Below are positions 24,556 through 51,461 of a stretch of DNA of 64,000 bases, one piece after another. Below the pieces are notes generated by a model. That model did not search any database. It was not told where the DNA came from and was given only the letters and a program-made list of their open reading frames with translations. Each line of letters begins with the position of its first letter. The stretch's first letter is position 1. Source of the DNA: Auanema rhodensis (taxonomy: Eukaryota > Animalia > Nematoda); the NCBI GenBank assembly GCA_964057225.1, contig OZ059896.1:14198001-14262000 (forward strand). The letters are read 5' to 3'. The position numbers and the translations under genes were made by a program.

Positions 24556-25419
24556 TCACTCTCTATTTCTCAGTTTCAACCTCTGCCCCTGTTTCTCTTT
24601 GTTTCCTCTTTCTCTTTCAAGTGTCTCTCTTTTTATCTCTCATTCTTTCTATTTCAATTCAAATTTTAATGAATTTTTTCTGACGTTGTATCTTCCAAAT
24701 AAGTTTCTAACTATTTTCTTTTAAAAAAATTATATTTTTATGATTTTTTTCATCATCTAGTGATTTAAGTAATAATATCAATATCTTTAAATTCTTTTGA
24801 ATTCTCAAAATCTTTCATTCTTACCTAATAAACTATTCATTTTTAAATTTTTTTCTTTCTTTCTTCATTTCCCAAATTGAATTTGATAGTAAACTTCAAC
24901 AACGTGTTCATTCACCAAAGATTTTGCTTATATTTGTATATTTTTCTTTCTTAAATATAGTAAAATATATAATTATCAAAAACTATATGATATGATATTA
25001 TGACTAGATGTTACAACATTTACAAATATTCTTCAAATGTTCATATATCTATGTTTCTATAAAGATTTTGGATTTTTGAATCTTTTATTGAAACATCTCG
25101 TGTACTCCTTCATCTCTGTACTTATATTCCATCATTTTCTTTAATATATTCACATACAAAATGATCAATTAAGTTTATATTTTTAAGTTTTATTCTACCT
25201 GCTGTTCTCATGTGTATCATATCTAGAAGATATACTATCTCTCTCTCTCCCCCAGCTCTCTCCCTCTCTTTCTCTCTTATTCGTACTTTCTTTCTTAATT
25301 TCTCTTTAGCATCATCATGTCCTTTTGCTAAGATTTTCTCTAAAATTGTTGTCTTTTTCGTTGAAATCTGTGTTACTTCTAATATAATTTTTAATTTTAA
25401 GATAGAAGTGAAATTTGCA

Positions 25420-30986: not shown

Positions 30987-31996
30987 TATTTTCTCTCTTT
31001 GTAAAGACATGAAAGAAAAACATTTTTTTTGTTTTTTAATTAATTGAAATTCGTTTTTAAATAAAAAAATATATTATATACAGTTTATATTTATAACTTA
31101 TTACCATATATACTTCCCTATTTCTTCTTTTTACTCTTATTATACTCATAATTTCTATTTCTTATTGATTATGAGCTGATAACATTCAAACGATATGGGG
31201 GTCGCTTCAGTTTCTATCATTCAATACTCATATCACAATACTCCATTTCTTGAACTAATGCTTTCAATATGTCTCTTTTTTTACTTTTTTTTATTATTTT
31301 TCAAAAATTCTTTATTTATATTTTAATTTTATTATAGAATATTAATATAAAAATATTATTTTTTTTTAATAATATCAATAAATATTACATTTATTTTATT
31401 CTTTCTCAACATTTAATTTAATAATTTATTATATTTTAAATTAATATATTTTATTTTTTAATTTTTTTTTAAATTTATTATATCTTTATTTCTCTTTTTA
31501 TTATTATTTTTCATATTAAACTCATTTGCAAAATCTATTCCTATTCTTTCTGATTAAAGTTTCTTGAACATACAACTTGTAACTTATTTTGTAAATTCCA
31601 AAATGATTGTTATCAATCAAGTATATTGTGAATTGCTTATTAACTATTTGAAGATATGATTCAGTTAGTTGCTTCATTCCTTTACATTCTTTTACATGTC
31701 TTTCTTCTTTTCATGTTAGTTCTTAAAGCTTATCAGTAATCTATTGAGACTCTTTTTCTCTTTTTCCTCTCTTTCTCTCTCTCGTTCTCTCTTATTCTCT
31801 CAATCGTTTTCTCTATTTCTCTCTCTCTCATTCTCGCTCTACTTTTGCAATAATTTTAAAAAATTTTATTTTATTGTATTGATATGAAGAATCAGAAATT
31901 AAAAATTAAAAAGTCTTCGAATTCTTTAAATTGTGTACAGAATGCAATAAGCAATAACTAACTTTGATTCTTCTTTTTTTCTAGATAGAAATCTTG

Positions 31997-34900
31997 ATGT
32001 TACGTTTCGCACCACCAAAACCCAAGAGGCGAGAACAGGAAACCGAGAGTTCATCATACTCCCATCAAGTAGTTGAAGTTACTGATTCTCATGAAGATCA
32101 AGCTGCTTCAACCCCTATAGTCGTATGATTTCTTTTTTTATTGTTTTCATGATTATTCTATGTTCTAGGGAGAAAGTGTTCATATTTCTCAAATAGAAAT
32201 AACTCCGTCTATACCGACGTCGCAACTCCCCAATACAGCTGATACAGAATCTCTCACATCTGCAGCTAGCTATGCGGCCAGGACTATGTTCAACTTCTCA
32301 TCGAAGCATATAGACGACTATAACACTGAGTCAGCATCTACTCCTATCTATGATACTCCAGCCATTTCTGCACCTGCTTACATTAGTGAACCACTGCACT
32401 ATAAGGCTTCATCTGTTAGCTATAATAAGCCTCTTCCTCCTCGTCTTCAAGATTATCATTCTCTCTCAGATTTGCGTTTTCCATCTACATACCGTCACGT
32501 AGTTAGTCCCAGCAGTGAGCTCGTCAAGTTTCAGATACCAATCCATCGTCGCACTGAGTCCTCCTCATCCCAACCAGAGCGGTTCTTTGCTCGCTATCAT
32601 CATCATGCGATACGCTCACCATATATTGACGAAACAACCGATAATCATTTCAGCACTTTAACAACACCAACTCATAGTCGTCAGATATCACATGATCAAA
32701 ACTTCACGCAGACAACAACTCGAGCAAGTATTCTCACCCAACTGACTCAGGAACAGTCAAAATCGGAAGAAGTTCTTCCAAAACTTGACCGCAATTATGT
32801 TCCTTATGCCGACTTGGATTACTCACAAAAAAAAGCAGAAGAACAATATACTGTAGAGATGATGAACTCACAAACTGAAACGGAAGCTCAGTTACAGGCT
32901 GAAGCTGAAGAACATCGAGCTGAAGCTCAGCGACTACGAGCTCAAGCCGACGAATTGCGTCGACAAAGTGAAATTGAAGCTCAGATAGAAGAGCAAACTC
33001 GTTTTACCGACCCTGCAAAACTGACTCATCATCATAATATCAGGGTTCTGAGTGTTGAAGATGTTTCGAACTTATCCCATTCAGTTTTAGAATATCAAAA
33101 AAATATTCCCATCTTTACCAACGTAAACTCGAAGAACGAGAGTTACGAAGAAGATTTTGTAAAATTCAGAGAAAACGAAACAAAATCTATGAGTCTTAAC
33201 GAAAACATGGAAGATTATCCAGTTGTTCGTGATTTGAATTATGAAAGTAATGTAACTCTTAGTGAATTTGAAACCGATTATCGTCCGTATCTATATAGAA
33301 CAGATTCCCATCGTTCTGAGTTCTATCATGTTGAATATGAGCCAGATTTTATTCTTTGGGCTGATGTTCCAAAACTCATTAAAGCCAACTTATTCTCAAG
33401 AGAATTACTAGAATTGGTTGGAATTTCACCTGAACAGCGTGGAGAGGATTTCAATATTATCTTAAGACGTATTGCTGAAGTTCGTCAAAATAATGAATCA
33501 AAGCGAACGATGGAAGAGAAAGATAAAATTGTTCTACAACACTATGAGGAAATCAACTCTTTACTTGAAGAGAAAAAACGGCAGGAAGAATTGGAAATAA
33601 AAAGACAAGAAGAAGCTAAGAGAGTACAGATTGAAAACGAACGAATTCTAATAGAGCAACAGCGTCAGCGAGAGCGAGATGCCCTGGAATTACAACAACA
33701 ATATGAGCGCGAAGCTCAGGCACAGGAGCTTCAACGACAATACCAAGAAGCTGAAGCCTTGCGCATACGTGAAGAACAGGCCTTGTTACAGCAACGTCAA
33801 CGAGATGCAGAAGCTTTGCGGATACGTGAAGAACAAGCCTTGTTACAACAGCGTCAACAGGAAGCTGAAGCTTTGCGCATACGTGAAGAACAAGCCTTGT
33901 TACAACAGCGTCAACAAGAAGCTGAAGCTTTACGTATACGTGAAGAACAGGCCTTGTTACAGCGGCGTCAACAGGAAGCTGAAGCTTTACGTATACGTGA
34001 AGAACAAACTTTAATAGAGCAACGTCAACGAAGTGCTGAACGTGAAGCTTATGAACGGCGTGAACGTGAACGATACACTTTAGAGCTACAACATCAACAT
34101 GAACGGGAAGCGTTGGAACAGTGTCGGCGTGAGCAAGCATTTTTGGAACAAGAACTCGAGCGTGATCGCAGAGCATTGGAATTACAAAGTCAACGTGAAA
34201 ACGAAGCTGTACAGCGTCATCGTCAATGTGAACAAGAGGTTACGCAGCTGAAGTATGAGCGTGAACAAAAAGAAATTGAACTTCAACGTCTGCGTGAGCA
34301 TGAATCTTCAGAGCTTCTTCGCCAACGTGAAGAGTATGAAAGTGAATTAAGAAGAATCCGAAACGAATATGAGAAAAAACAATTCGAACAGAATGAGAGA
34401 CATATTGCTGAACTTGAACATGAAAGACACACTTTTGAAGAAAAAGAAAGAGCTTTAAAGCTTGAACAAGAACGACTTGCCTCCATGGCAGTTACAACAA
34501 CAACAACAATACAAGAAGGGGTGAGGAGGACTTCAAACTAAAAAATATTTTATTTTAATATTAAAAAGAAAAATTAATAATAATTTGATTGCAGACGCCA
34601 TTACACCACATCAACTATTATGATAATGAGCCTAACTTCACCAGCAATGCTATTGAAAAAATGGCTGATAGTCTAACAACTAAAGTAATGGATGTTGAAA
34701 CTCTAATTGAAGAAGCAAATCAAATTCAAAAAGTATAGTTTATATCTTATTATAATCTAAATTATATAAATATTATAATTAGAAACATGATACTAAACAT
34801 CTATATGACAACATATATGAAGAAAGAATTTATGATAAAGTGAATGATACACTTCATCATCACTATGTAAGTTTTATCTAGTTTTAAAGTTTTTTTTTTC

Positions 34901-37622
34901 TTTTTTGAATTATAAAATTATTTTTAAAAATAATTATATTTATTTAATATTATTTAAGGATGATCATTATGTTTCAAGTTCAACCAATCAAAAGTAAGTA
35001 TTTAAAGTTTACGTGTAAATTAGCATAAAATTGACGTGACATTCATACAACCTTATTTTCAATTTTTTTTAACTGAAAATTGGTTGCTTTTAAACTATAT
35101 ACATATATAGTTATTATCATTATTATTATTAGTAATATAATATTATTTTCAGTGTTCATTATGCTTCTACAACAATCTCTCCAACTGCACCATCAAATGG
35201 TATTTTCTGTTTTATCAATTTTTTTTCAAAAGAAATTATGTTTGCAGGAGGATATATGATACCAAATAAGAAATACGTTGACGATGAACATATTTATGAA
35301 GATATTGAAGAGATTATTTCAGTTAAAAGTACTTTGTTATCAGTTAATATTTCAAATTTTATTATATTTAAGCTATTCCATTAACATATTCTGAGCCTAT
35401 CATACAAGAAGCTGATTCAACAACTAATAAAATAAATACTGATAGTAATCTTAGTTATAGTAAGTATTATATTTATAATATTATATATACAATTATATTT
35501 CAGCTTATCAGAAAAACATCTATGAAGATGTGTATGAATCTGTTGACACTGGTAAGGCTGCCGGAATAACAACTGAAACAATTCGTAATATGAGCCGTAG
35601 TAACCAATGGGATGAGGATATGACTATCAAGGTATAATACTTTACTTTCCCATAAGCTTTATATCTTAATCAATTATAATTCTATTAATCTATTCATAAC
35701 TCTCTTACAGACTCCTCCCACTCCAGGCTGGATAATTGGTGGCAATGTCACAGGTGAGAAGACATGCACACCGACTTATCAACCTTCTATCTTTCGACCT
35801 TCTACTTTTCCATTTTTATCCTCAGCATCATGCTCATCATGCTCTGATTTCTCATTTCCACCTACACCAGATGAATATAAGAAATCATCATTAACAACAT
35901 CATATTTTGATCAATATATTATCAAAACATTATTATATAAATTATTGTTTAGTCAAAATATGATGTCATCAGCATATCGATTTCTAATTATATTCATAAT
36001 AATCTCTTTAATTCCATCATTATTCCGTTTGTTACGATTGTTCAAACGATATATCTTCAATCGTTCAAGTTAATAATCAAATTTAACAGAATCAAAAAGA
36101 TTTCTTTTCAAATTTCAATTTTTCATTTGTATATTCTGGTAATATCCACCAGTTCAGCACTTGCACTTCACCCTTGATTATCTGTAAATTTAAGCTGAAC
36201 TTTAATTCTTTTTTTATTAAAATTAAGGTTACAATATTCTAAAAATATTTAAATATTTGCAATGGTTATTGTAAAATTATATATTTTCTTTTTGAAAAAT
36301 AGTTATTATTTTAGTACAAGCTGAACCAATCATCTTATCAAAAAGCAAAGAATTAGAAGAACAAGGTATTATATATTTAAATATTTATATTTTATTAATT
36401 ATATTCAAATTAAGTTTTCAAAGTTGTTGATGAAAATGGTAATCGTCATACCATTGAGCAAGTTATCATTGAAAATCCAACTGGAAAATCAGAAGAAGTT
36501 GAAGATAAATTCCATCGCGGTTATGTTGAAGAAAAACGAAGACTTTTTGAAGCGTAAGTTTAAAAAAATTAAAAAATTAACTAATTATTAATTTATTTAA
36601 AGAAATGCTGAAAGACATAGATTAGCTCAAGAAGTTTTACATCGTAATTCGCATAAAGCAGCTGAAGTTTCTTCCACTACACCTATACATAAGGAAGTTG
36701 AAGAAAAGGTTCATAAAAATTTTTCTATGAAAATGAATTGTATTATTCAGGTTGTACAACCTGTTCAAGCATCATCAATTCCAAAGCCTACTGTTCGTTC
36801 TGTTCATCAATTAGCTAAGTAAACTAAATAATATTTCTTTCTTTCATATAATTTATAAATTATAGGAATTTTGAAGCTTTATCTAAACACGATAATGCTC
36901 GTGCTGAATCTTCTGATTATCGCGCAATTGTTTATGAAGAAACAAAACAAGCTAATCTTGCTGATAGTAAGAGGTAATTCAAAATATAATTATTACAATA
37001 ATTATATTTTCATATATTTAGTGAGGCTGTTGTTGAATCTCCTACTACATCTATCGGACATGGAGTAGATGTAACTCCAACGTATCGGAGGATTCACCGT
37101 ACTGTTAATAGCTATGTGTAAGTAATTTTGAAATTTTGCAAAAACTATTTCACATAGTTGATTATACAAACTATGTGGAAATGTGTGCTTCTTATGCATG
37201 TACCATTTCCCTTTTTCCTATTTTTACCTGTTTCTTATCCATTATTGGTAATCAACCCGAGAGTCTTCACTACTCAAGCATAGCGGAATCAATAGCTTCA
37301 TCGTTTATTCTAGTCATATTCCTTCTGATGCTCTTTTAGCTGGCAGATCGGTTCACTATCTGATTCATCATGCCTACCCGATGTTGTTAGTCCCCATATA
37401 AAATCCCTTGGTCATTCATCATTAGATAAGTGAGTCCTTGGTACCCTTCAAAAGTCCTTTTCAAAGCCTTTCCATTATGGGATTTACCTTATAATATAAT
37501 TATGCACATGGTTAACAAGTTTTACTTTTAATATCACATTCCAGCGGTTCTACTGCTTCTTCAGTTACTGGATCTGATGATGCTGCTTCTTCTTCTGCTC
37601 ATCTAGGAACAACGAATCAACA
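31997..37622 (+). CDS. Large low-complexity/coiled-coil protein region (~1,290 aa, ~18 exons); positional candidate for an IFO-1-like intermediate filament organiser
   Basis: The ATG at 31997 (MLRFAPPKPKRR) follows a TTTCTAG acceptor. A 2.35 kb exon (32169-34520) contains the 751-aa ORF with an E/Q/R-rich helical rod. A chain of phase-consistent small exons then runs to 37545-37622, which ends in a phase-2 GTTAGT donor with no stop. The IFO-1 identity is inferred from position, size and composition only. Confidence 0.85.
33747..34030 (+). repeat. Coding tandem repeat, 57 bp (19 aa) unit, ~5 copies
   Basis: AEALRIREEQALLQQRQ(Q/R)(E/D) is repeated; units start 57 nt apart (33747, 33804, 33861, 33918, 33975). 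Confidence 0.95.
35711..36073 (+). CDS. Alternative terminal exon extension encoding a C-terminal transmembrane (tail-anchor) segment
   Basis: Reading through the GTGAG donor at 35754 keeps the frame open to TAA 36071-36073, ending ...SAYRFLIIFIIISLIPSLFRLLRLFKRYIFNRSS*. Confidence 0.6.
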   Translation, partial: TPPTPGWIIGGNVTGEKTCTPTYQPSIFRPSTFPFLSSASCSSCSDFSFPPTPDEYKKSSLTTSYFDQYIIKTLLYKLLFSQNMMSSAYRFLIIFIIISLIPSLFRLLRLFKRYIFNRSS

Positions 37623-40600
37623 GTTAGTTTCCTATTAAAATTTTAACGAAATTTTCAATTCCGGCCGAAATTGAAAACTATTCCGTTTGAGATATTTTTT
37701 TCTCATCAATTTCCATACATTTTTAAATCGATAATTTGAATATAGCTTCTTACTAACTGCATCCTAAGCAGTTCAACATCATTCTACTTATAGTTTGTAG
37801 ATTGAAAATAAAACAAAAATATATCATTATATAAGTAATATAACATATAATATAACATATATTTGAAATGAATGGCTTACATGCCAATTCCTTTTCTTTT
37901 TCTTTCTCCCTCTTTAGCATGATCGCCATCTTTTCTTTCTCTCTTTCTCTGTATATCATCTCTTGCCTTCTCTCTTTATTCTACTCCAGTTTGAGCTCAC
38001 AATTATATTCTAATGCTTGCCTTTTGCATCCTCTCAAAAGCTATAATGTCAATCAGGTCGTCGCATCTGTTCGCTCTGTAATTTTCTCTCATTCACCATA
38101 CTGCCTTCAGGCAATAATTGTTCGATTTTACTAATCGAAACCACATGATGATCCCACTGAGGTTTTATGGAATCAACCACAAATGTTTGTATTTTCAATA
38201 TCTTGCTCAATGTTTTACCTTATGACTTCGATGTTTGACTTGTAACAGTCAACATTGTACTCTGTAGACAGTCCGAATGGTTGCTCATCTTCTCTCTTTC
38301 TCTCTTTCTCTCCTTATCTCATATTCTCTGTTTTACTTTCTTACTTTCTCTCTCTCCTTTTCTCTCTCTCTTTCACTTCATTTGCCTTTTCCCTTTTGCA
38401 TCCAAACATGACGAGACAGCTGGCTGAGTAGTCATGAGGCTCCCGCAATCGACCTCTTCCTTTGACCATAAACGTGGTTAAGCTTCTGCTCTTTCATTAG
38501 AATATTGACTTTTCCTTCTAATTTTCTGAGCTTTTTTTCCTTTTGACATTCAAAAATGACATGTTGTTTCCGTCTGACATCATATTGTTGAAACAATTTC
38601 ATTTTTCCCCGATTACTTCATTTCAAAACAAACACGTAGAATCATCAATGCGAAATTCGCTTAGTCAGAATGAGAAAGAAAAACATTTAAAATCAACGAA
38701 ATTATTACTTTTTTCATCTTTCTTCTATATTTTTCTACTAACTATATATGTATATATCTAGAGATTTCATAAAATATTTGGATTATCTCTTATACGATGT
38801 CCTTAGATGTATTGTATTCTCATGTTATACTAGCTATATCTTGACCTTCATTCTTCATTTATTTCTCTTTTCTTCAAACTATTCCTCAACATTCTTTATA
38901 CTTTTCTATTAAAATTTTTATTTTACCCAAAGCAATTATGACTCAATGTCAACTATTCAATTCAGTTTTTTTTGTTTTTTTTTTCATTTATCTTTTCATT
39001 TTTCCCTAATTGGTCTTCTTCACTTATTCGAATAATTGTTTTTCAGGTTTTTAACCTTTATTTACTTAACTATTACATCTAATATGTATACTATGCTATG
39101 TCAAAGCTATTGATACTTCTGTTTTTCTTTTTCTTTCAAATAACTTTCGTTGTTTAAAGAAAAGAAAACATCTTTAAACAATTTCTTTTCAATATCGATC
39201 AGCTAATATTCTGAAATATTTATCAGAACTCATTTCACTTTTTCTTCTTCTTCAATCCTCTTCTTCTACTTTTTTCGTTGAAAAAGTTTTTTTTCATGTT
39301 CGTTCTTAAATGAAATCAACTTTTTCGATTCTCATAATGATTTCCTTCACTTTCTCTTCAGCTTATTTCAAGTTGAAAGCCTGATTTGGGCGACAATTTT
39401 TTTGTGAAATGCAATACTTACATCTTCAATTGTGATGAACTGCTCAAGTTTTAAAGGAAATCAAACTTAACGACTAAGAGTGAATACATACATGTGCAGA
39501 AGAAAAATATTTTAATATACCTTAAAGCATTTGAGAAAATATAATTATCAATCTATATATCTAACCATTCATTTACTATGCGCCGCTTCATTTCATATTC
39601 TTCTCTCGTCTTTTCGTCTTGAATATTAATATGACGGCAATGTGCGCGAAATCTAGCATTTCAATGGGTGAAAATGATAGAAATGGCATATTTAGACATA
39701 TACTATGTGTATATGTGTCCGGATCAAACGAACAAACAGCCAGACAGGCAGATCGACGTTAAAATGACTGAAATACATAGCATGGTGAAGAGACATGTGT
39801 ATGTGATTGAGGCATGTTGTATGGCTATTGAATGCGTGAAATCGATTAGATTGCCTGATGATTTTCGGACAATCGAATATGACAGTAGAATAGAGAGGCA
39901 GCGAGAGAGAGAGAGAAAAAAAGAAAGAGAGAAAAGAGTGAAAACATTGAAAACAGAGTCTGTAAAAGAGAAGTGAAAAGGCCGAAACCCATGATGGGTC
40001 ATTGAGAGACTAGTTTGACGTTGGATAGGTCAGAAAGCACCTCTATCCACAGTTCCACCAAAATCAACATGTTATTCCTTTAATAAACTCTATGTTATCC
40101 ATTTTCTATAGAGTATATTAGTATTCCTCTAATCGTATCATCCTCTAAACCTACATACCAGTGTTTCAAGTACGTAAATGGTTCAGCTGAAACTATCTAA
40201 TCTTCATTCCCTCACTTCTTCATCTTATAACAATGTCTATCCAAGTCTATCTTTGTTTTCTTTGTTGTCTTTTTTTTATTTTTCATGGTAAACTGCAGAG
40301 TATAGAACTTGTGAGTTAAACTGAATATTTCATTGGCGAAAATTCTTTGCTCCAAAAGACTTCAACGTCTTCCACATCTACTAGTTTGCTTTAAGTTGCT
40401 CCAAATACACAATTTTGCTTGGAACAACAAGTCTAAACGGAACCATTACAATGCTACTTTATGGATTTTTCCCAATTTGTTTTTCAAAGAATTTTTGTGG
40501 CAATAACCGTTAAGATTGAAGATATTTTTTGCAAAAGTGCATGTTATACAAACATTTTTGATTATTAATTTATCAAAATCAATTTAAATCTAAATAGCAA

Positions 40601-42050
40601 TGAAAATATTTTAAATATTATGAATAGAAACAGGTTTTTCTTGAAAAAATTCAAAAAAATTCATTTTCTTTATTTTATTTGAAAGAAGAAAATATTTGTT
40701 GTATATAGACACAAAGTCGATGATGATAGAAGTCTTCTCAGTTAAGTTTATCTAATTACTATTCTTGTAGCTTCACAACCTCTAGATGGATAGAGGGAGA
40801 GAAAGAAAAGAAAAAAGATTCTTCTAAACACAACCAAAGACTTACAACTTAACTTCAACTCTACTACAACTTCTTTCTTATCCTACTTGTACCTTTAAAA
40901 CTCCTCTGGCTCCTCCTCCCTCCCCCCCCTCTCTCTCTGTTTCCCTCTCTCACTCTCTTTCTTTCTTTTGACAATAAATCGGTCTTTTATGAAATTGTAA
41001 AGATAAGGAACAAATTAATTTGAATATATCTTTCCATTTTGTGTTTTCTTTTATATGTTGGTCCCATTTTCATTTCTAATATTCTGATGCATATTGAAGA
41101 GACGATGGGAATGAAGCACGCTATTGGTATTTGGCCAGTAACATGCTTCATTCATTGTTTTCAAATTATTTTTTTTTTCTAAAAAAAACTAAATAGACAT
41201 ATAATAAACTATTTGGTTTTTTTTCTTTAAATTATATATTATTATTATTATTTCACGTCAAATTATTTAACGTGAATTATGTAAAATACTTATTTCTCAA
41301 TCTCATTTTCACTTCTTTATGCCTCTAGAGCGGTTGTGCTAGATGTGTCTGCTTCATCTCATTGGATCATGGTCTTAAAGTTTTCACCATCTATTTCATA
41401 ACACTGAGTGCTAGAAATTTGTGTGTTGGAAAAAAATGTATTTTATGAATGAAATACATGTTCATAATGCTCTTAGTTCTCCTCTTTCCATTTACTCTAC
41501 CTATAGCTTGTCTATTGATTGTAAGTTGACAAGCTTGAAGCCGTGGGGGATGACGAGAGAAAGGAAAATAGCATATAGGCGCCTTTTTCTTTCTACCACC
41601 AACTGAATATATCCTGGAAACAGATGCTTGAAACATCCTGAAACTCATACCTTTAATTTTTTTTATTTCAAACTATTGAATTAGCTTTAACAGGTTTCTT
41701 ATTTCATATTATTTTCTCAATTGATCTCACTTTTTATAAAATTTCAAATAAGAACTGATAGAAACAACCTTATTTGGCACAATCCATCAGTTCATATTTA
41801 CATTCTTCATAGCCTATCAAGTTTATATTATTTACCTCTTACTCTCCCTTTCTCTCTCTCTATGTCTTTTTATTTATTTTCATTTTTCTCTATCTCTTTT
41901 CTCTTCCTTTTTGGGCAATTTTATTCTTTTTTTTTTCATATTTTCTTCCAATTTCCCTACTTACTTCTCTACGTTTTTTCACAATTTTACTCATACCACT
42001 TAGCACAATGTTGTATACATCTTTGTAATCTCACCTTAATTTGTCTATCA

Positions 42051-42051
42051 A

Positions 42052-42090
<39 letters not shown>

Positions 42091-42139
42091 ATATCTCTCT
42101 CTCTTTCTCTCTCTCTCTATATATCTCTCTCTCTCTCTA

Positions 42140-42170
<31 letters not shown>

Positions 42171-42198
42171 ATATCTCTCTCTCTCTTTCTCTCTCTCT
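42051..42198 (+). repeat. Compound (CT)n/(AT) microsatellite
   Basis: About 150 nt of interrupted CT repeats. Confidence 0.9.
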
Positions 42199-43798
42199 TT
42201 CTTATTTTGAACTTTTCAATTTAAAAGTTAAATAACTATTCAATAGATGTTATTTTATTTTACATTATCAGATAGTTTATAGCTCATACATCAAAACTAT
42301 TATATGGATAAAATGTATTTACTTCATTTCTCTCTCTCTCTCTTTTCCCGCTTTTTTAATTTTTCTACTCACGTTCTTTTCCTTTTCTCTCTTTCTTACT
42401 TTCCCATATTCTTTCTATTTTTCTCTTAATATCACTCTATTTCCCTCTATCTCTCTATCTATTTCTCTCCATTTTTTCATGAATTGATTGAAATTGAACA
42501 GAATTATCGAAGTATTTCCATCTCTCTCTATATATACATATACATACATATATAGAGACACATGTATGTACATGCATACATATACTCTCACACTTTGTCT
42601 AACTAGTCAACGTGTTCTCGTTATACCTTCGAACCTAAATACACAAAGTTTCCAATAAAAATTAAAAAAAGCTTTTCTTCAATCTCAGATTTTCAACATT
42701 TTCTCTCCAAAATGTTCTTCCTATTCCTTCTCTTACTTTTCATCAATTTTATTATCAAACCAAAATTCTCTCTCGCTTCTTTTCTTTCTAATCTCCAATA
42801 CATCCAAAGTCGATTTTCCAAATTTGGGTGTGGCAGCCCGGATATCCGTACGCTTTTCGCGTATATTCAATGAGTTAAGAAAGAATCTAAACACAACACT
42901 CATTTTTCTCAATACTTTTTTTATTTTTCAAATGAGAACATACATAGACGTTCACCCTTTCCTACAACCTCCCCCCCCCCATTCTTCCTCTCTTTCTCTC
43001 CCTACTTCTCTTCTAACCTCCTTATCTAGTTCATGCACCCCCTCCCCTCCATGAGTCAGTAATTCCAAGAGCTCATTGCTCAATTGCTCTCTCTCAAGCA
43101 TTCTTATTGCTTTTTCAAGTATTTTCATAAAATAAATGTCTTATTTCTAGATTTATTTTTAATTATAAGAATAAGATAAAATAAGAAAATGAAAATGAAT
43201 ATAACTAACTATAACCATATAGTTTCATTCAAATATTTGTTTGTTAATATATTTATTTATTATTTTTATTTATTTTTCTCATATTTTTCTCAAACAGTTG
43301 TGAATTTAAGCACCTCTCACAAACAACAACTGCCCTTTCGTTTCATTTTTTGCTTCTTCTTCTTCTTCTTCAGGCTCTAAAATCTTGTTGTGTTCTCTCT
43401 AATTTTCTCAGTAATTTTAACAGAAATTCACTTTATTCTCAATTTTTCTTATATTTATATTCACTATTTTATTGATTTTTTTTATAAAATTGATTTAAAT
43501 TTTACATTTTTTTTTGAAAAAAAATATGAATTTTTGATTTTATATATTCATATTTGGCAAATATGCTGAAAAGCTTCATATTTATTTGAAACAGAACGAT
43601 AGTTATCTCATTCCTTCATCATAATTTTCTCCATTTCTTCATCTCTCCCTCTCTTAGTTTATCGCTCTTCTTCTTCTTAAGCTCTCTAATGCTAATTCTC
43701 TCATATTGTCTTTCTTGTTCAATATGAGTTCGTTCTCATCTTATTTTCAGATCAAAGACACTATGAAGCCAATTTCATCTATGAATTACTTCCCCCCA

Positions 43799-43845
<47 letters not shown>

Positions 43846-45513
43846 ATTTCTCTTCTTCTCAATTCTGAAAATATTTCCAGCAATATCTATTCTCTCTATT
43901 TATATAATAGTTTTGTATTCAAGGAATATACATTCCTCTACATGTTCTTCAAATCCATGTAACATCCAGTCATTTTAATTTTTTTTTTCTGCTCAACACG
44001 AGACGTTGTTCCATTGTTGTTGAACTTCCTTTTTGTCACCTTTAGCGTTTTTTCCGTTCAATTTGCATCGTTCTTTCACCTTTATAACCTCCTCGTTCTC
44101 TCATCTAGAGCATGTTCTGATAATCAATGATCAGCACTTACTTAGCTTTTCTTCAGATATCACACCTGATTCTCTTTTTATTCAAAAATTCTCTGCACTT
44201 TTTCAGTTTAACACATGTTCTATATATTTAGTTTTTCTTAAAATTGATTATAATTTATATTATTTTCAAAATGAAAAATTTAAAAATATGTTTTTTCAAT
44301 CTTATAATCTGAGAAATTCTTTATTAATCTTTATATTACTTTTTCTATACATAGTAATGTATAGATTACATCTCAATTCCCCATCTTTTCAAAGATTTCA
44401 CCCTTCATTCTATTTTTTTGGTTTAAATTCTTCTTATCATCACTACAAGCTTATCATCTTGTAGCTTGTCGTCTTTTCACTTCTTTTCTTTTGAGCTCTC
44501 TCTATCTTTCTCTCTCCCTCTCTCTACCTTTAGAAACCGCAAACCAAAATTGAAATCATCTATCAATAACCAACTATTTCTTACATTTTTGAACTTTATT
44601 GTGTTTTATTTCAAATTTGCTCTCTTTATCTTCTAGAATCCCTTTAATCTTTTTTTCAATTTTTATGTTATCTTATTCTTTCTTTACTTTATATAGTATT
44701 TACTATATATATATAACTCTATTTCTAAACTATTCTTCAAAGCTCCAAGCAACATAATTTTGTTTTTTTTTTTCATTCAAATCAACTGTTTTCATAAGTT
44801 TTTTCTGTTGATTGTACTTGCGGATACAACTTGTAACTTGTATTGTGTGTATGTTTGTGCTTCGTTTGTCACATTCATGCATTATAAACCATCTACTCGT
44901 TCTCCCTCTTGGTACTCCCCCCTCCATCCCTCCCTCTCTCTCTCTTTTCTCTCTATAAATTTTTTTCTCGTTATCTCTAAGCTTCCACCATCCTTTTGTT
45001 CCATCGTTTTTTGAACATTTTTTTCCGTTCATTTTCTCAGGTTCATATGTTCCCTTCCCCCCTCCCCCACTTGTTGTATACACAGAAAAGAGATTTATTG
45101 AAATTTCAATCAAGAGATTTTTTATTTTTTCCAATGTTTTACTAACGAATATGGAATGAAAAGGTGGAGCAATAAAGAACAATAGAATTAAAGAAAAAAC
45201 GAATTTATAAAGAAATACGAAGATGGACTAAACAAATCCATTGGACATCTCCTTACACCACAAGCTTCAGGATCTACTTCATCTCCAGCCCATCCTACCC
45301 CTCTCAGCTGTCAACATCATCTACTAAACTTTACATGTATATTCTATCCGTTATATATCTTCTTTGAGCTTTTCCTTCTCATCTGCTTTCCTCCTGCAAT
45401 GATGTGTTGTATGTATGTGTATGTATGTGTGTCATCATCTTCATCATCAGAACTCATGTGTCCACCCATTTAGCTTTTTCTTGTCTTCTCTCTCTCTCTC
45501 TTTCTCTTTCTTA

Positions 45514-45545
<32 letters not shown>

Positions 45546-47595
45546 TTCATATTATCCGTTTTTTGTCCTTTTCCATACTCTTTTATCGAACTTTTTTATG
45601 AATTTTCCGCTCTTCTATATGCTTATCGATAGCTGTTTCTTTTCATTTTCTCAGTTAGAATCTGACGGCAATCACGTCTTTCTACTCTTGCTATCTCTCA
45701 CTCTCGTTCTCTGATTCTACTTTCTGATCAATCAATATGTGCTTTCTTCTCTTTGGATCACTACAACATAGCAGAACAACAGGCAACATTTCTCGTTTAA
45801 GCTGCATATCATCTTAATATTCCTTACGAAACCTTATGATTTGCTTTTTATGTTTCTGATTGGTTTAAAAGTTTTTTTTTCTGCGTAAAGTTTGTGATGA
45901 ACAAAGAAAATTATTTATATATATCTCAAGAATGTTATCTATTTGTTATAATTAACTAAAAATATTTTATTTATATTATTATTTGGAGATTGAACTAAAC
46001 GTACCATTTCATTGTATGTCTACTAAACTTGCGTTAAAGAACTTAAAATGAACGATAGAAGAAACGATGAATGAGATATATGAAGAGAAAAAGGTAAAGG
46101 GAGAGAAAGCGAGAGAGAGAGAGAATGAAAACAAATCATAGAGAGAGAAGGCCCCTTTCGCCTTTTGTTTACTCTGTCTTCGTCGCCTCTGTTCCGCGTT
46201 TGTCCTCCTCAACCCCCTCTCTCTCTTCTCTCTTTCTCTCTTTCTCTCTTCCTCTCTCATTCCTCGTTGAGTCTTTCTTCCTCCTTTCACCTACTCTCTC
46301 TTTTAATTCATGTAAAGAACTTACGTTAATTCTCCTTCATATTTTCTCAATGAGATATTGCGATACCTTCTGAATCCTTGCGCAACACACTCCATTCAGG
46401 ACCAATTACCTTTATATTTTTTTCTGTTTCTACTTTCTTTTTCCTGATGCTCGACAGCATTCGCTTCTCTTTCTTTGTCTCCTCCTTCTTCTTCAAACTG
46501 TTTGTCCTCGTTGAACTCATTCTTCAGTTGCCATTTCACTGTTATAGGAGAAGTTATTTGTTCTTTTTTAATTTCAACCCAGCGATTCTTTAAAGAAAAA
46601 AAAACAAAAAAATATGATAAATTGTCCATTTTCCTATATTTTGCTCATCCATTTTATATGAAATTCCCAAACTAAATTTCAGTTACTCCTTCAATTTGCT
46701 CTCGAAAGAAATCATATTTTTCTTCATTTTTATGTTTATTCCTTGATGCATCTGTCAATTTTTTGATATTATGAGGCTAAAAAGCGGACAAGCAGATCGT
46801 TTTCCTTAGTCAAGTCACAAATTGTTTACTAGCTATAAACACGAGAGTTTTTTTCAATTCTGCTTCTCTGTTTCTTTTAGTTTTTCCTTTTTTTTTCAAA
46901 GTTTTCTTCATCCTTTTTATTTATTCCTCTGACTGTGCCCCGCTCTTCAAACTTAATACGAATTAAATTCTTAAATATTATATTTTACTATATATTATAT
47001 TCAAAAATGTTTTTTATACTATTTTTCTTGTTATTTTTGATGAATCTTACTGAAATACATTCTATTCTTAATCAGCAAGTTATAGATTTATTCGCTTTTC
47101 CGCATACTTTACAACTAAAAATAGTTTTGAATGGCTATTACTAGTAGCCAGTACCAGAAAATAGTGAAGAGAGAGAGAGAGAGTGGTGCTTATACTTATC
47201 TCTCTAGCTTCTTCTACATCTTCTCGTTTACTGAATAACCAAATTAAACATATATCCACCACACATGGGAACAGTTTGTTCTTCTGTTTTTCTTCGTTTA
47301 CTTACTTATATGTATAAATGAATATACATATACATATATAAACAGATAAATATTTTTTATTCCAAAAAAAAAAAAAATTCAACCGATCTATAAGAGTCGT
47401 ACACTTAAAATGAATATTTCACGTAAATTTCACCCATCTTTCCTCTTCATATGCTAATTAGTATAAACTTAGCAATTACTTATATCATCATCTTCATCAT
47501 CATCAACTTTTAATCGTTTTCTTTCATTTTCTTGCAAATATTCTGAAATATCTTCATATTTTCATTCGAGATTTCAATTTTCATTATCATTTCAG

Positions 47596-50439
47596 AGTTA
47601 CTGCCGATTCGACGCCTACGTCGACTGGCGTTCTCTCGCCTGAAACTGAGCCTATCTACGATAACGTTGCTGAGGTAATAGATGAGACTTTACATGATAT
47701 TTCATTAATCAAACCTTGATTCAGGAACCAATATACGCTACTGTTGCTGACTCTTTTGCAGGATCTGATTCTCAAGAAAATAAAAACTCAGTTCGGCGTT
47801 CTTGGACAGTTAACACCTATCAAAACACTGTTACTCTCGGACACCGCAAGTATAAGGTATTATCTATACTTATTGATTTTTTACTCTAAAATACATAATT
47901 GTAGATGTTAGATGTGGATTATCATACAGCTAATGGCCATATTGCCAATGGATATGAGAAGTTCAATGGAGAAGAGAGTCAGGTTCTTCATGAATGGGAT
48001 CCACGTCCATTAGTTAACGCTCTCTATTCGGTTAATAATTTCATTGTAAATCATATTTAACATATTTTGTTTGAAGATTTCATATGAGCCACGTATGGAA
48101 ACTAAGAGAAATCGTTTCATTAACATGGAAGGACATGTTGAAGTCCCATCTGAAGAAACTAAAACCATTGCTGAATTGGAACGTGAATGGAAACAACAGT
48201 ATATGAGAACCAAAGAAGGACGTCTTCAAGTCTTCGTGGTAAGAATTTTTCAATTTTTCTTTGTAATATCTATCATTTTCATTTCAATCTTTTCTTTTTT
48301 AGTCTCACTGTGCTGAAGAATCACCTGTATTGGAATATGTTCTCTCCGGTTGTGATATTGATGCCAATCGTGATGAGAGAACTCTCTTGATTCAGGGAGG
48401 AACTAAAAAACTCAGTGTTCTTATTAGGTATATCATATATCATTTTTTCAAATCTTTTTCTCTTTAAATCTTAATTCTCTGGAGACATTTCTCTTCGGTG
48501 ATTTCCAAAATTCATCGTTGTTATGTGTTTTGGTCGAGAATCTTCTCATCTTTTATTCTTGTTTTTCTTGTTTTTTTTATCAAAAAAAGTTTGAAAGAAT
48601 TAAGAGAATTTAAAGCCAAAAACAAAATTATTTGTTTGTAATCTTGTTATTATAGAGTTCCATCCACTGTATTCGACAAATGGCGCCAAGCTATCATGTC
48701 CCATACAGCTTCATCAAAGATTGATGCTTATGTGAAGCCAATTCCACGTCCTCTTCCACATATTTCTAAGGTTCTCTTATTGTGTTATTTGTATTTTCCT
48801 TATATGAATCCTTTAAAGAGCACCGTCATCATTGAGCTTGGTTCATGCTCCATCCGAGGAGGAATCTTGAACCAACAACCATCATTGCCACAATCTTTCT
48901 TCCCAGCTATTGCTATCAAGACTGATGATGGCCGTTTGATTGTTGGAGCTGATGCATATGCTCCAGAGGTACAGAAATAGCTAACACAGATTTCAAGATC
49001 ATGTCTAATATGCAGATTCGTCACAATGGAGAATTCGTTCGACCAATTCAAGCTCATGACCCCGCCTTGGAACGATATACTTTGGACAAGGATGTAGTTA
49101 TAGCTTGCTTGAGAAAAGTTGTTGATGACTTGGGAGTTGATCCAGCTCGTAACCAAGTTCTTCTCTCCATTCCACAAAATATTCCAAATGTTCTCATTGG
49201 TGAACTCATCACTATTGCTCTGCAAGACATTAATTTCCAAGTGAGTTAGCATTGCTTGATCAAAACTCATTTGAGTCATGTTTCATGGCTTCTGCTCTTC
49301 TTTATTCCTAAAAAAATTTAATTCATTGTCTATAGGGTGCTGCTATTACTCGTCAGCCATCGCTCATTCTCTATGCTTATGATGTAACTACTGGAGTTGT
49401 CGTTGACATTGGTGATCGTTTGAATATTGTTCCAGTTATTGATGGTATTCAGATACAGTTGAAACATGTTTCTAATTACTCTTTTAGGTTATGTTGTTGA
49501 TTCTGCTATCTGCTCTATTCCATATGGAGCTATCCAAGTTCGTGAAGCTTTACGTTCCAACCTTTGCTCAAATAATAAGGGATTATACTCTTTCCAATCA
49601 CCTATTGAGAAGTTAATTCTCAGATATGTCATGGAACAGGTAAAAAAGTTTTTAAATTTCTTCTCAAAACTGAATTTTCAAATATTTTAGACCAGTTATG
49701 TTCCTGAGAATTGTGCTAAGGAAGAAGAAATGAAGAAGGATGAAGTCAATGTATCGTTGGAGCCTTTCAATCTTCCAGCCGGTACTCTCAACAATTTTAA
49801 CGTATGTATCAATATTCAAGCCTGTTTTACAACTTTAAAACTTTATAAATTTTGTTTTGTTAAGATTGATGGATCTCGTTTCACTTGTACAGAAGGATTA
49901 TTCAATCCTAAAAAATGGGGATTAGAAACTAAGGGTTTACACCAGCTTGTTCATGATGCTGTTCAACAAAGTCCTATTGATAGTCGTCGTAATCTTTATA
50001 GGTTTATAATTCTTTATTCATAAATTTTATAAAATATTTCAATTCAGAAATATATTCCTGGCTGGTGGGGCTTCTTTGTTGCCTGGCTTAGCTGAAAGAT
50101 TAGAACAAGAGCTTTCTAACATCGCTCTTAATTCAATTCATACTCAGGTGAGAACTTTTCAAAGTTTATTTGAAAGTTTATGAATTTTTTATGTTGGGAC
50201 CTTAAAGCATAAAACAACTTTACGACACTTTATATAGAATATATAATCTTGAAATATAACTATTATTCTCCAGAATGCTTTAATACATGTTTTTTTAGGT
50301 TCACATCTCCCCCTGGAGGTATAATGCCGCTTATTTGGGAGCCCAGATTGTGGCAACTTCAGCTACATTTGAAGATAGCTGTGTAACAAAAGAAAACCTT
50401 CCACAGTATTTGATTAATTTATCATCAGCACCATTCTAA
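47596..50439 (+). CDS. PH-like domain plus divergent actin-fold (actin-related) module, 14 exons, ~620 aa; resembles recalled C. elegans F42C5.9
   Basis: PH-like segment INMEGHVEV...WKQQYMRTKEGRLQVF...FDKWRQAIMSH. Actin-family motifs VIIELGSCSIRGG, LYAYDVTTGVVVDIGDRLNIVPVIDGYVV, SRFTCTEGLFNP, PIDSRRNLYRNIFLAGGASLLPGLAERLEQEL and RYNAAYLGAQIVA. Stop TAA 50437-50439. The first two exons contain no Met and start in phase 2. Confidence 0.92.
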
Positions 50440-51461
50440 GGAATATGCCATTTAATTCCTCAAATGATATTTTTTTCCTTTAGTGGTTCCATCTATTTTC
50501 ATATTTCTATTCTTGATCTTCTGGTCAATCATTCGTGCCCTTCCTTTCCCTTCACCATCTCTCTCTCTCTCTCACACACAGATTAATTTTCTATCGTCAT
50601 TTTTGAATCTGTATCATAACCTATATAGTATAGTTAAAAGCATACAAATTATAGTTAAAGATCAGCTATTTTAGAAAAATTTGAATTAGTTAACAACTAT
50701 ATAGTGAGTATACGGACAATATTTCATATGGTATCTTGATGTTAGTGACAATATTCTTTTTTTAATTTAAATATTGCATATGTATCAAGTACTATTAATA
50801 ATAATTTTTTTTAATTTAATTACTAAGTCGATTCCTGTTCTAGTTATATATATATATTATATTTCTTTTGTATAAAACAAAAAAAAACAAAGAATTTATA
50901 GTCAGTAATTAATGGCTGTCGAGAAACATTGTGATAAAAACATATTTAAAATTTTACTTAATGTTAGTATTGTATCAGAAATATTTAATAAAGTATATGG
51001 CTAAACAGTTAATATTTCCTTTTGTTTTTAATAAAATTAAATTTACAAAATAAAAATTTAGTTATTACAAACTTTAATTCAATCATCATCTATATAAATT
51101 ATACAGTTATGGAAATATAGTTAAAATTATTTAAAAAGTGGGACTCTCAGACATGTGGGCAGAATTGTCAATCTTCTGACCAACAAAAACTTTTTTTTAA
51201 ATAACAAGGTTTTTGATGAGTTGAGCATGGCTTTGGATGTGTAAATACCTGAAAGTGTAGACATGGAAAATACAGAGCATGGAAATTTGGCAAAAAGGTG
51301 ATCTAGACCCGACCGAATACATCTAATATACAACTTTAAAAATCTGTTAAAATTTTATGTGAAGCATTTTTTAACTTTATTTGTTTTTTTTTTAATTAAA
51401 AATAAATATTAATCAGATAGTTTTTGGAATATGATGGACGCTCATGATTATCTATATCTTG

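Follow-up and report, generated by a model that had tools for sequence, protein, structure and literature searches.

Does a pair of open exon chains separated by about 10 kb on the + strand of AT-rich Auanema rhodensis DNA encode one fused protein, two neighboring genes, or both? The chains lie in a 64,000-nt stretch (hereafter, the window), and a sequence-only reading of it had proposed a single gene fusing a coiled-coil scaffold, a PH domain and an actin fold. Sequence comparison indicates that both halves are very probably parts of a single locus. The explanation we favor, though with some reserve, is that this locus is complex and would encode both a rod–PH–actin-fold protein of about 1,908 aa and a nested PH–actin-fold protein of 554 aa. 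Thus, the single-locus part of the earlier proposal is upheld by long homologues, shared motifs and intron phase, but "one fused gene instead of two" is not, because a stand-alone short protein would also be made from Met 47905. The locus is a member of a nematode family that is catalogued but uncharacterised, and the same layout is already present in databases in the form of predictions.

The upstream coding chain (31997–37622, + strand) comprises 18 exons, for which a script verified coordinates, splice sites and the open frame. It amounts to 3,848 nt, that is, 1,282 codons plus 2 nt, and contains no stop codon before its last donor. In the encoded protein, a disordered N-terminal part rich in Tyr motifs is followed by a helical rod and then by a disordered Ser/Thr-rich tail. 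The rod, which is rich in E, Q and R, lies inside exon 2 (33459–34520, + strand). Its AlphaFold model features helices of 182 and 140 residues (18–199 and 214–353), with a mean pLDDT of 82.7 and values up to 93. The model does not separate the coiled coil suggested earlier from a charged single α-helix. Within the rod, Tandem Repeats Finder detected five copies of a 57-nt (19-aa) tandem repeat (33744–34029, + strand). Further downstream, alignment and a motif census revealed the exon 7 motif YVDDEHIYEDIEE (35274–35312, + strand), an SH2-type docking motif resembling pYEEI/pYDxV. Exon 9 (35506–35631, + strand) carries the motif YxxNxYED...TTETIRNMSRSNQWDED, which provides the principal sequence tie to the extensions at the N-termini of long homologues. 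A word search with the 751-aa exon found no near-identical protein of 413–1,314 aa.

The downstream module (47596–50439, + strand) consists of 14 exons that remain open from phase 2 up to the TAA at 50437–50439 (625/626 aa). It begins with two leader exons, both devoid of ATG in any frame: Ea (VTADSTPTSTGVLSPETEPIYDNVAE; 47596–47674, + strand), which lacks Met and follows a strong phase-2 acceptor, and Eb (EPIYATVAD...RRSWTVNTYQNTVTLGHRKYK; 47725–47856, + strand), which encodes conserved protein sequence. The PH domain does not lie between the two genes but sits inside the downstream module at 48077–48770 on the + strand (exons 48077–48235/8, 48303–48427 and 48656–48770). These exons are 54–76% identical to homologues in tblastn, and the mean column identity in alignment A1 is 62%. 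Pfam PH models gave no match at E ≤ 0.01 on homologues. The fold was modeled on the M. belari segment, 53–76% identical to the PH exons of the window, and the model (m8b52fa7873e6) has seven strands and a helix (119–139) at moderate confidence (pLDDT 66). It matches PH domains of ASAP1, AKT and ARAP3 (TMt 0.70–0.78), and nearly all of its best 50 Foldseek matches are PH domains, the best ones having a probability of 1.00.

The actin-fold domain (48819–50439, + strand) occupies the last eight exons, ending with the same TAA. Pfam Actin (PF00022) matches the exon piece 49730–50023 of the window with 27.1 bits against a cut-off of 27. In homologues, the actin domains score 124–153 bits (E 1e-36 to 1e-45) and cover Pfam Actin positions 5–400 of 410; the eight window exons are collinear with them. 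The earlier assignment of an actin fold is borne out by one window exon together with the full-length fold in homologues. The module has this full-length fold in common with actin and actin-related proteins, and the PDB chains nearest to the homologues are conventional actins (E about 1e-33) and not any particular Arp; it differs in that its fold sits behind a PH domain and is about 25–35% identical to actin. The nucleotide loops read from exon translations (ELGSCS, DIGDR and AGGAS) are partly kept. Relative to conventional actin, D.GD of the second phosphate loop and GG of the adenosine loop are retained, whereas the first phosphate loop reads ELGSCS in place of DNGSG and the second DIGDR in place of DSGDG. 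In the alignment, ELGS is conserved family-wide. Judged by these comparisons, the actin fold is complete but divergent.

How do the two chains meet? The last upstream exon ends at 37622 in phase 2 with no terminal stop, as can be read directly (...AATCAACA|GTTAGT), and the first downstream exon starts at 47596 in phase 2, after the acceptor TCATTTCAG|AGTTACT. A script confirmed that the chains join in frame, and neither has its own stop or start at the junction, in keeping with a joined model. If 37622 is spliced to 47596, an extension of >1,000 aa ahead of the PH–actin module follows. The donor is of a weak GTT type (ACA|GTTAGT) and its PWM score of 0.9 bits is level with the weakest among the 30 other donors of the locus; the acceptor (a strong TTTCAG) scores 8.6 bits, above the locus median. 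Reading through the donor (37623–37638, + strand) leads to a TAA at 37636–37638 (QLVSY*) and to a protein of 1,287 aa ending in ...TTNQQLVSY*, just as noted before. The proposed phase-2 intron (37623–47595, + strand; 9,973 nt) is C+T-rich, abounds in CT microsatellites and contains no recognisable gene. Outside positions 43241–43290, none of its longer ORFs reached the curated cut-off of a Pfam family, and the interval had no Rfam match at the gathering score, in agreement with the earlier failure to model a gene there. The pyrimidine richness ascribed to its + strand is also evident (GC skew −0.16 to −0.54, AT skew −0.14 to −0.28). In runs X1–X4, words of the downstream module are present at about the exonic share. 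The interval probably holds the internal promoter or the outron of the short isoform.

Fused models in other nematodes had been named as a check on the proposal, and predictions of this kind turned out to exist in six or more further nematode genera, with the module as their C-terminal part. The 75-aa actin-fold exon matches 29 proteins, and every one with a named organism comes from a nematode. In all long matches (1,573–2,853 aa) the matching region lies 317–327 aa from the C-terminus, as it would in the joined model of the window. Long models with a C-terminal module were found in Mesorhabditis, a Steinernema-like species, Strongyloides, Parastrongyloides, Rhabditophanes, Aphelenchoides and Toxocara. 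They include the predicted "PH domain-containing proteins" of S. stercoralis (A0A0K0DTP8, 2,103 aa), S. papillosus (A0A0N5BCK6, 2,046 aa), Parastrongyloides (A0A0N5A0G8, 2,074 aa), Rhabditophanes (A0AC35U7F9, 2,203 aa), M. belari (2,228 aa) and A. besseyi (KAI6181302.1, 2,853 aa), all with a C-terminal actin domain. Exon by exon, their PH–actin-fold module is 35–76% identical to that of the window. As in the joined model of the window, the N-terminal extensions are long and poorly conserved. In Mesorhabditis and Aphelenchoides, histidine is strongly enriched in the extension.

Homology between these extensions and the upstream protein is limited to two short motifs, those of exons 9 and 7, the remainder being not alignable. 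The exon 9 motif TTxxIRxMSRxNxW (35569–35622 in the window) aligns with residues 864–918 of P0003, 842–890 of P0041 and 863–884 of P0005 (z 5.7–7.0); by tblastn, the same link has an E of about 0.1. The motif turned up only in Mesorhabditis, the Steinernema-like P0003, A. viteae and the window, and was not found in Strongyloides or Aphelenchoides. In A. viteae it is unannotated (L005:4817-4876) and lies 5.9 kb upstream of the PH–actin gene on the same strand. The exon 7 motif (HIYE[DE]I) matches residues 744–757 of P0003 (YDDDEHIYEEIDD; z 7.3), that is, in the Steinernema-like model only, where the two motifs occur in collinear order. The junction intron is in phase 2 in all four genomes compared (window, M. 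belari, A. besseyi and A. viteae) and is the longest or among the longest of the gene in each, although the 9,973 nt of the window far exceed the 3,644 nt of M. belari and the 1,388 nt of A. besseyi.

Could these observations instead reflect two neighboring genes? The upstream gene would then end at 37636–37638 (1,287 aa), the downstream one would have its own promoter and a tiny ATG first exon within 37.7–47.6 kb, spliced in phase 2 onto 47596, and the fused models would be artefacts of conserved adjacency. We regard this as unlikely, albeit deserving of attention: donor strength at 37622 is low, no intron of the model is longer than the gap in any of the species, and C. elegans lists F42C5.9 and F42C5.10 separately. 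Gene predictors do merge neighbors, and the long models elsewhere are gene predictions; moreover, a 1,308-aa model from M. spiculigera comes to its end at the junction, which speaks against fusion. Both A. viteae annotations open the module with an 11-nt ATG exon, ATGCATGATAG|GT, in phase 2, and the interval in the window offers eleven local phase-2 ATG first exons with acceptable donors, including ATGAGTCA|GT at 43051, which had been pointed out earlier. However, gene predictors are well known to resort to very short initial exons when an open frame lacks Met, so that exons of the 11-nt type constitute weak evidence. One S. stercoralis contig has an open stretch of at least 413 codons that precedes the conserved Met and is continuous with the PH–actin module, and a frame open for >400 codons leaves no place for a gene boundary. 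Separate genes are also difficult to reconcile with the retention of phase 2 in four lineages and with the upstream-type Tyr motifs, which go on into Ea and Eb.

An improbable variant of the fusion would have one or more small unrecognised coding exons inside the 10-kb interval and no direct 37622–47596 junction. M. belari does have an additional 54-nt exon after its long intron, and the distance from the exon 9 motif to Eb is about 690 aa there versus about 305 aa in the window. On the other hand, in the Steinernema-like P0003 the exon 9 motif is about 320 aa from the PH module, compared with about 305 aa in the joined model of the window, a spacing that fits a direct junction. A GC-rich patch at 42801–42866 weakly resembles the EDFRNS..F.RI motif of homologues, but exon 16 (TYRRIHRT) corresponds to that motif just as well, and when all open fragments of the + strand were searched with a profile, neither the 42.8-kb region nor the rest of the interval received support.

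For the nested short protein, the leader exons are informative. As reported earlier, the first 70 codons of the module lack Met; the first one is codon 72 (47905–47907, + strand), which opens the third exon and is located just after the acceptor ttgtag. Eb has neither a Met nor an in-frame ATG, and the genomic frame ahead of the acceptor has none either. Homologue alignment shows that the Met column is kept in 9 of 12 aligned homologues (MPELRD, MPDLD, MPTIDG or MPELTDG), M. belari, Rhabditophanes and Aphelenchoides among them; three Strongyloides/Parastrongyloides rows have Met two columns off, A. viteae has none, and a 552-aa Toxocara model begins at this very residue. Met 47905 is almost certainly the start of the 554-aa short isoform, as we infer from this pattern and from the leader. 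In four lineages the leader (211, 225, 279 and about 320 nt) is open in the frame of the Met and free of ATG in all frames, with a joint shuffle probability of ≤0.0012 in each. Where DNA was read, the Ea/Eb counterparts in Mesorhabditis (M. belari), Aphelenchoides (A. besseyi) and Strongyloides (S. stercoralis) are likewise ATG-free and end at the Met, and only 5 of 3,559 windows of 320 nt in the S. stercoralis contig are ATG-free. The frame stays open for 70–93 codons in three of the lineages and for 106 or more in the fourth (shuffle P 0.00–0.03 each). Eb aligns with residues 1572–1600 of M. belari P0041 (z 8.2), and RRSW.V.TY...LG.HKYK is kept despite synonymous codon differences. Since the amino acids are conserved through such differences, the codon comparison shows Eb to be under protein-level constraint and hence translated. 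The notion that translation of the downstream gene yields the short protein alone, Ea and Eb being pure 5′ UTR with an open frame and similarity that do not come from translation, could draw on the ATG depletion, the conserved Met and the Toxocara model, but is highly improbable because neither so long an open frame, nor the amino-acid conservation, nor the constant phase 2 is expected of a UTR.

The favored scheme of nested products would work as follows. The long isoform would run from ATG 31997 through 18 exons to donor 37622 and across the 9,973-nt phase-2 intron to acceptor 47596, yielding about 1,908 aa with a disordered N-terminus bearing Tyr motifs (IYDxV/IYEDI), a rod of ~320 helical residues, a disordered linker, the PH domain and the actin fold. 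The short transcript would arise in the long intron, either via SL1 trans-splicing onto 47596 or from an internal promoter, retain 47596–47674 and 47725–47856 as its ATG-free 5′ leader, and be translated from Met 47905 into 554 aa. If donor 37622 is left unused, polyadenylation would give a rod-only product of 1,287 aa ending in QQLVSY. We infer these splicing events and transcript starts from the exon chains, their phases and the ATG depletion.

In C. elegans, ifo-1 (TTM-4), which is probably F42C5.10, and F42C5.9 are putative counterparts of the two halves of the locus, a match suggested by composition. The cosmid numbering suggests that F42C5.10 adjoins F42C5.9. What is described for F42C5.9, an actin-related protein, is what one would expect of a PH–actin-fold short isoform, of which it may be an orthologue. 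IFO-1 has been published as an intestinal protein, whereas a F42C5.9 GFP fusion was localised in body-wall muscle cells. Neither word searches nor the atlas search returned any Caenorhabditis proteins. F42C5.10 has been described as histidine-rich (PMC3048360), as the Mesorhabditis and Aphelenchoides extensions are; the upstream protein of the window has only short HHH runs. Loss of IFO-1 lowers apical actin (PMC5040974).

The PH domain may place the actin-fold module at the membrane, and in the long form the rod, together with phosphotyrosine-type docking motifs (Nck/Src SH2-like), may tie the module to cytoskeletal partners. The Tyr motifs said to be shared by both halves were recovered as [ILVP]Y[DEA]x[VIP], with five copies encoded by the upstream chain and two by exons 47596–47856, and in homologues, where checked, they are 5–10 times commoner than in shuffles. 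Nephrin and EPEC Tir (HIYDEV) are scaffolds whose phosphotyrosines recruit the SH2 domains of Nck or Src. Like them, the window protein carries the motif [ILVP]Y[DE]x[VIP] repeatedly within a disordered region (EHIYEDI, RIYDKV and EPIYDNV). This likeness is a resemblance of motifs, and as such may provide a lead on mechanism but does not imply membership among such scaffolds. The M. belari counterparts of these motifs read SPIYDEV and EPIYDEV.

The upstream gene was rebuilt from the sequence as a chain of 18 forward-strand exons running from ATG 31997 to 37622, and a script check gave 3,848 nt, or 1,282 codons plus 2 nt, free of stops. As the sequence-only reading had stated, the chain has no terminal stop and ends at 37622 in ...AATCAACA, directly before GTTAGT. 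Read-through at this donor leads to ...TTNQQLVSY and a stop, that is, to a 1,287-aa protein. The acceptor of the downstream module at 47596 was likewise found as described (TCATTTCAG followed by AGTTACT). With the frame imposed by phase 2, the 14 downstream exons are open to the TAA at 50437–50439 and encode 625/626 aa, again by script check. Their first two exons, 47596–47674 (Ea) and 47725–47856 (Eb), indeed lack Met; the first one is codon 72, at 47905, and opens the third exon. When the two chains were joined by script at the predicted long-form junction 37622/47596 on the forward strand (...AATCAACA joined to AGTTACTGCC), they stayed in frame and gave a product of ~1,908 aa. The sequence observations behind the proposed ~1,900-aa fusion therefore hold, and its one-locus interpretation is in part supported by the frames, by collinear motifs and by the shared phase 2. 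On these grounds we regard a rod–PH–actin-fold fusion (the long form) as probable, and the module also has a predicted nested short form with which the putative fusion would coexist. ATG 31997 itself is preceded by a good acceptor (ttttttctag) 12 nt upstream, within 31975–31999; an acceptor just 5′ of the ATG is what is usually seen where a first coding exon receives SL1 by trans-splicing.

How widespread is this arrangement? Exon 49016–49240 as a query retrieved 29 protein matches, including several short unlabelled fragments from Logan, ENA and JGI assemblies, and all organism-labelled matches were from nematodes. The best identity to this 75-aa actin-fold exon among database proteins was 63%. 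Long models, which are gene predictions, came from a Steinernema-like homologue (P0003; 1,809 aa), Mesorhabditis (1,573 and 2,228 aa), Aphelenchoides (1,614 and 2,853 aa), and Strongyloides, Parastrongyloides and Rhabditophanes (2,046–2,203 aa). In the long models the exon match always lies 317–327 aa from the C-terminus, as it does in the model from the window. Shorter models were found in Toxocara (552 and 1,099 aa), Acanthocheilonema (691–761 aa) and Steinernema glaseri (778 aa), and as an S. stercoralis isoform (714 aa). The rod–PH–actin-fold architecture is thus already present in databases in the form of uncharacterised predictions. In S. stercoralis, a 4.1-kb contig has an open frame of at least 413 codons that precedes the conserved Met and runs on into the module. 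At least in this species, the module and a long extension are therefore read in a single frame, with no gene boundary between them. Two Logan contigs of this species (L001:1006–1019 and L002, from ERR406857 and ERR406856) carry an A10 run versus the A9 implied by the 2,103-aa model P0036, which shifts the frame between residues 1147 and 1151. Strain polymorphism and homopolymer error are possible causes; slippage would be another if the runs are RNA.

We next consider whether the upstream gene corresponds to the N-terminal extensions of the long models. In tblastn searches of all homologues against the window, the PH–actin module alone aligned at E < 1e-3. Shorter similarities were found at the level of motifs. 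Exon 9 (TTETIRNMSRSNQWDED) matches residues 863–884 and 842–890 of two Mesorhabditis proteins (P0005 and M. belari P0041, respectively) and 864–918 of P0003, with z of 5.7–7.0, and exon 7 (YVDDEHIYEDIEE) matches P0003 at 744–757 (z 7.3). The exon 7 and exon 9 matches are collinear between the upstream gene and the extensions, and the distance from the exon-9 motif to the PH module is about 320 aa in P0003 versus about 305 aa in the joined model. The exon-9 motif is also encoded by an unannotated open fragment on the forward strand of Acanthocheilonema viteae CM102057.1 (L005:4817–4876; TTVIRRMSRTNKW; TTVIRRMSRTNKWNMKDEVK). This fragment and the PH–actin gene, which starts 5.9 kb further downstream, are on the same strand, and no gene is called in the 10 kb before the PH–actin gene. 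The upstream half of the locus has probably been overlooked in the filarial annotation. The motif matches and the A. viteae placement argue that the upstream gene is the counterpart of the extensions, and that the order of motif exons followed by the PH–actin module has been kept across distant nematode groups, a homology that rests on two short motifs.

Other searches added little. Exon 2 (784 codons; a 751-aa query, used whole and as residues 1–420) returned nothing near-identical among candidate proteins of 413–1,314 aa, and the window does not come from C. elegans. A protein search with the Mesorhabditis extension gave Mesorhabditis matches alone and none from Caenorhabditis, and an atlas feature search with the extension gave arthropod clusters alone, all sub-threshold. 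A profile of the linker region, built from 12 sequences and too heterogeneous, picked out exons 13 and 15 alone, collinear and not significant (E 0.55 and 2.3). Matches of exon 11 (z 7.4, S. stercoralis) and exon 3 (z 4.1) were mutually non-collinear and were dropped as evidence.

The junction itself shows recurrent features. At the equivalent position, M. belari has the longest intron of its alignable coding region (3,644 nt; the model also has a 4,203-nt intron, in a dubious 3′ extension), and in A. besseyi the intron found there (1,388 nt) is longer than any other in the gene. The acceptor exon starts in phase 2 in all four cases (the window, M. belari, A. besseyi and A. viteae), and three of these four junctions have a weak GTT-type donor. 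On a matrix derived from the 30 other donors of the locus, the 37622 donor scores 0.9 bits, equal to the weakest, and the 47596 acceptor scores 8.6 bits, above the median. GTT-type donors make up 4 of the 31 in the locus (36709 GTTCAT, 48771 GTTCTC, 50002 GTTTAT and 37623 GTTAGT). Homology fixes the ends of the exons next to those at 48771 and 50002, so weak GTT donors do work in this genome. A weak donor combined with a very long intron fits a possible choice between splicing on, which would give the long form, and terminating, which would give a rod-only form. One model in M. spiculigera stops at the junction, and both A. viteae annotations start the module with an 11-nt ATG first exon. Of the words sampled from 47500–50500, a share of 0.48 was present in runs X1–X4, which is uninformative on the 5′ partner of the module. 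Because full coverage of the exons would yield about this share, the PH–actin module is probably expressed and spliced.

The interval 37623–47595 was said to be pyrimidine-rich and to contain no gene that could be modeled. Both statements were borne out: it is strongly C+T-rich on the forward strand and gave no Pfam or Rfam match of weight, with 43241–43290 excluded from similarity searches (N-masked in local BLAST; the Rfam scan split around these positions). A candidate extra exon at 42801–42866 (VDFPNLGVAARISVRFSRIF versus the EDFRNSAVFKRISR motif) was unsupported by profile search, and exon 16 was an equally good counterpart. Many sub-threshold Rfam matches, to plant and animal miRNA precursors, fell at 42527–42589 and 46075–46265. 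They scored 19–40 bits against gathering scores of 64–184 and were rejected; these palindromic low-complexity stretches are best read as microsatellites that form hairpins. The AATAAA at 37806 carries no information in a genome of 70% A+T. Eleven local ATG first exons comparable to the 11-nt one of A. viteae can be drawn in the interval.

Are the Met-less exons coding sequence or leader? Eb aligns to M. belari residues 1572–1600 (z 8.2). The shared RRSW is encoded by CGG CGT TCT TGG in the window versus AGA AGA TCG TGG in M. belari, and third positions likewise differ in the codons of the conserved V, T, Y, G and K. Because the conserved residues use different codons, Eb is under constraint at the protein level. 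No in-frame ATG is present in Ea, Eb or the 41 open genomic codons upstream of the 47596 acceptor, and therefore a coding exon further upstream is needed. On the other side, Met 47905 is conserved in 9 of 12 aligned homologues (MPELRD, MPDLD, MPTIDG, MPELTDG); in Strongyloides and Parastrongyloides the Met is two columns off, and A. viteae has none. The 552-aa Toxocara model begins at this Met. Moreover, no ATG occurs in any frame between the junction acceptor and the conserved Met in four lineages, over 211 nt in the window, 225 nt in M. belari, 279 nt in A. besseyi and about 320 nt in S. stercoralis. In each lineage, the shuffle probability is 0.005–0.033 for a leader without ATG, and at most 0.0012 for one that is also open in the frame of the Met. 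Only 5 of 3,559 windows of 320 nt in the S. stercoralis contig are ATG-free, all at the leader, and none of 1,454 windows of 211 nt is ATG-free in the downstream coding sequence of the locus. A 5′ leader needs out-of-frame ATGs purged, and coding sequence needs an open, conserved frame. Since both properties are seen, the simplest reading of these sequences is dual use, with Ea and Eb coding in the long form and serving as leader of a predicted 554-aa short form that starts at 47905. Such putative dual-use exons, coding in the one form and an ATG-free leader in the other across four nematode lineages, offer a clean comparative signature for finding nested isoforms elsewhere.

As to the domains, the 33459–34520 part of exon 2 is predicted to form two helices of 182 and 140 residues (mean pLDDT 82.7), and this modeled region is a putative rod, either a coiled coil or a single alpha-helix. 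It contains a 57-nt unit repeated 5.0 times (33744–34029, 87% matches; encoding QEAEALRIREEQALLQQRQ), which is a recent in-frame expansion. Of the proposed scaffold–PH–actin order, the PH domain is present, but it is encoded by downstream exons 48077–48770 rather than lying between the two genes. In the closest homologue, the corresponding segment has a predicted PH fold, with Foldseek matches to the PH domains of ASAP1, AKT and ARAP3 (TMt 0.70–0.78). Exons 48819–50439 encode a complete actin fold, nearest to conventional actins and to no particular Arp, with altered phosphate loops (ELGSCS and DIGDR). The locus has seven [ILVP]Y[DE]x[VIP] motifs, which are enriched 5–10-fold in the Mesorhabditis and Aphelenchoides extensions. 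Sequences of the type pYDxV and pYEEI are docking sites for the SH2 domains of Nck and Src, and the motifs of the locus and its homologues resemble them. The PH domain might hold the actin-fold module at the membrane, and in the long form the rod and the series of motifs might tie it to partners. If the long form is real, its actin-fold domain would be the C-terminal module of a 200-kDa scaffold and not a free subunit; to our knowledge, an actin fold as a scaffold module is unusual within the actin superfamily.

More tentatively, and with less confidence than in the fusion itself, the rod and PH–actin-fold genes could together make up a single ancient nematode gene, represented in C. elegans by two descendants, ifo-1, which we take to be F42C5.10, and F42C5.9. 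The long product would then physically link a protein that organises intermediate filaments to an actin-fold module that binds membranes, with the dual-use exons coding in one form and an ATG-purged leader in the other. The extensions of Mesorhabditis and Aphelenchoides are His-rich. F42C5.10 (ttm-4) has been described as histidine-rich and Cry5B-induced (PMC3048360), a likeness that is suggestive only. F42C5.9, a stand-alone actin-related protein, is found at the muscle membrane and at structures resembling dense bodies (PMC3096668) and appears in a Cry5B proteomics list (PMC9704757). Apical actin is depleted on IFO-1 loss, and the link from this organiser of intestinal intermediate filaments to apical actin has been described as open (PMC5040974). 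The joint reading, if true, would supply a direct molecular reason for this depletion, and an upstream half orthologous to IFO-1 would make the link concrete and testable in C. elegans.

The locus also shows why annotation predictors alternately split and merge it. In a Pristionchus fissidentatus model (P0007), the PH–actin module is merged with a 7TM-like gene. The window has a similar gene some 6 kb before the start of the rod gene: the C-terminal, receptor-like residues 601–647 of P0007 match 26034–26174 on the forward strand (E 1.4e-4; ORF 25210–25623).
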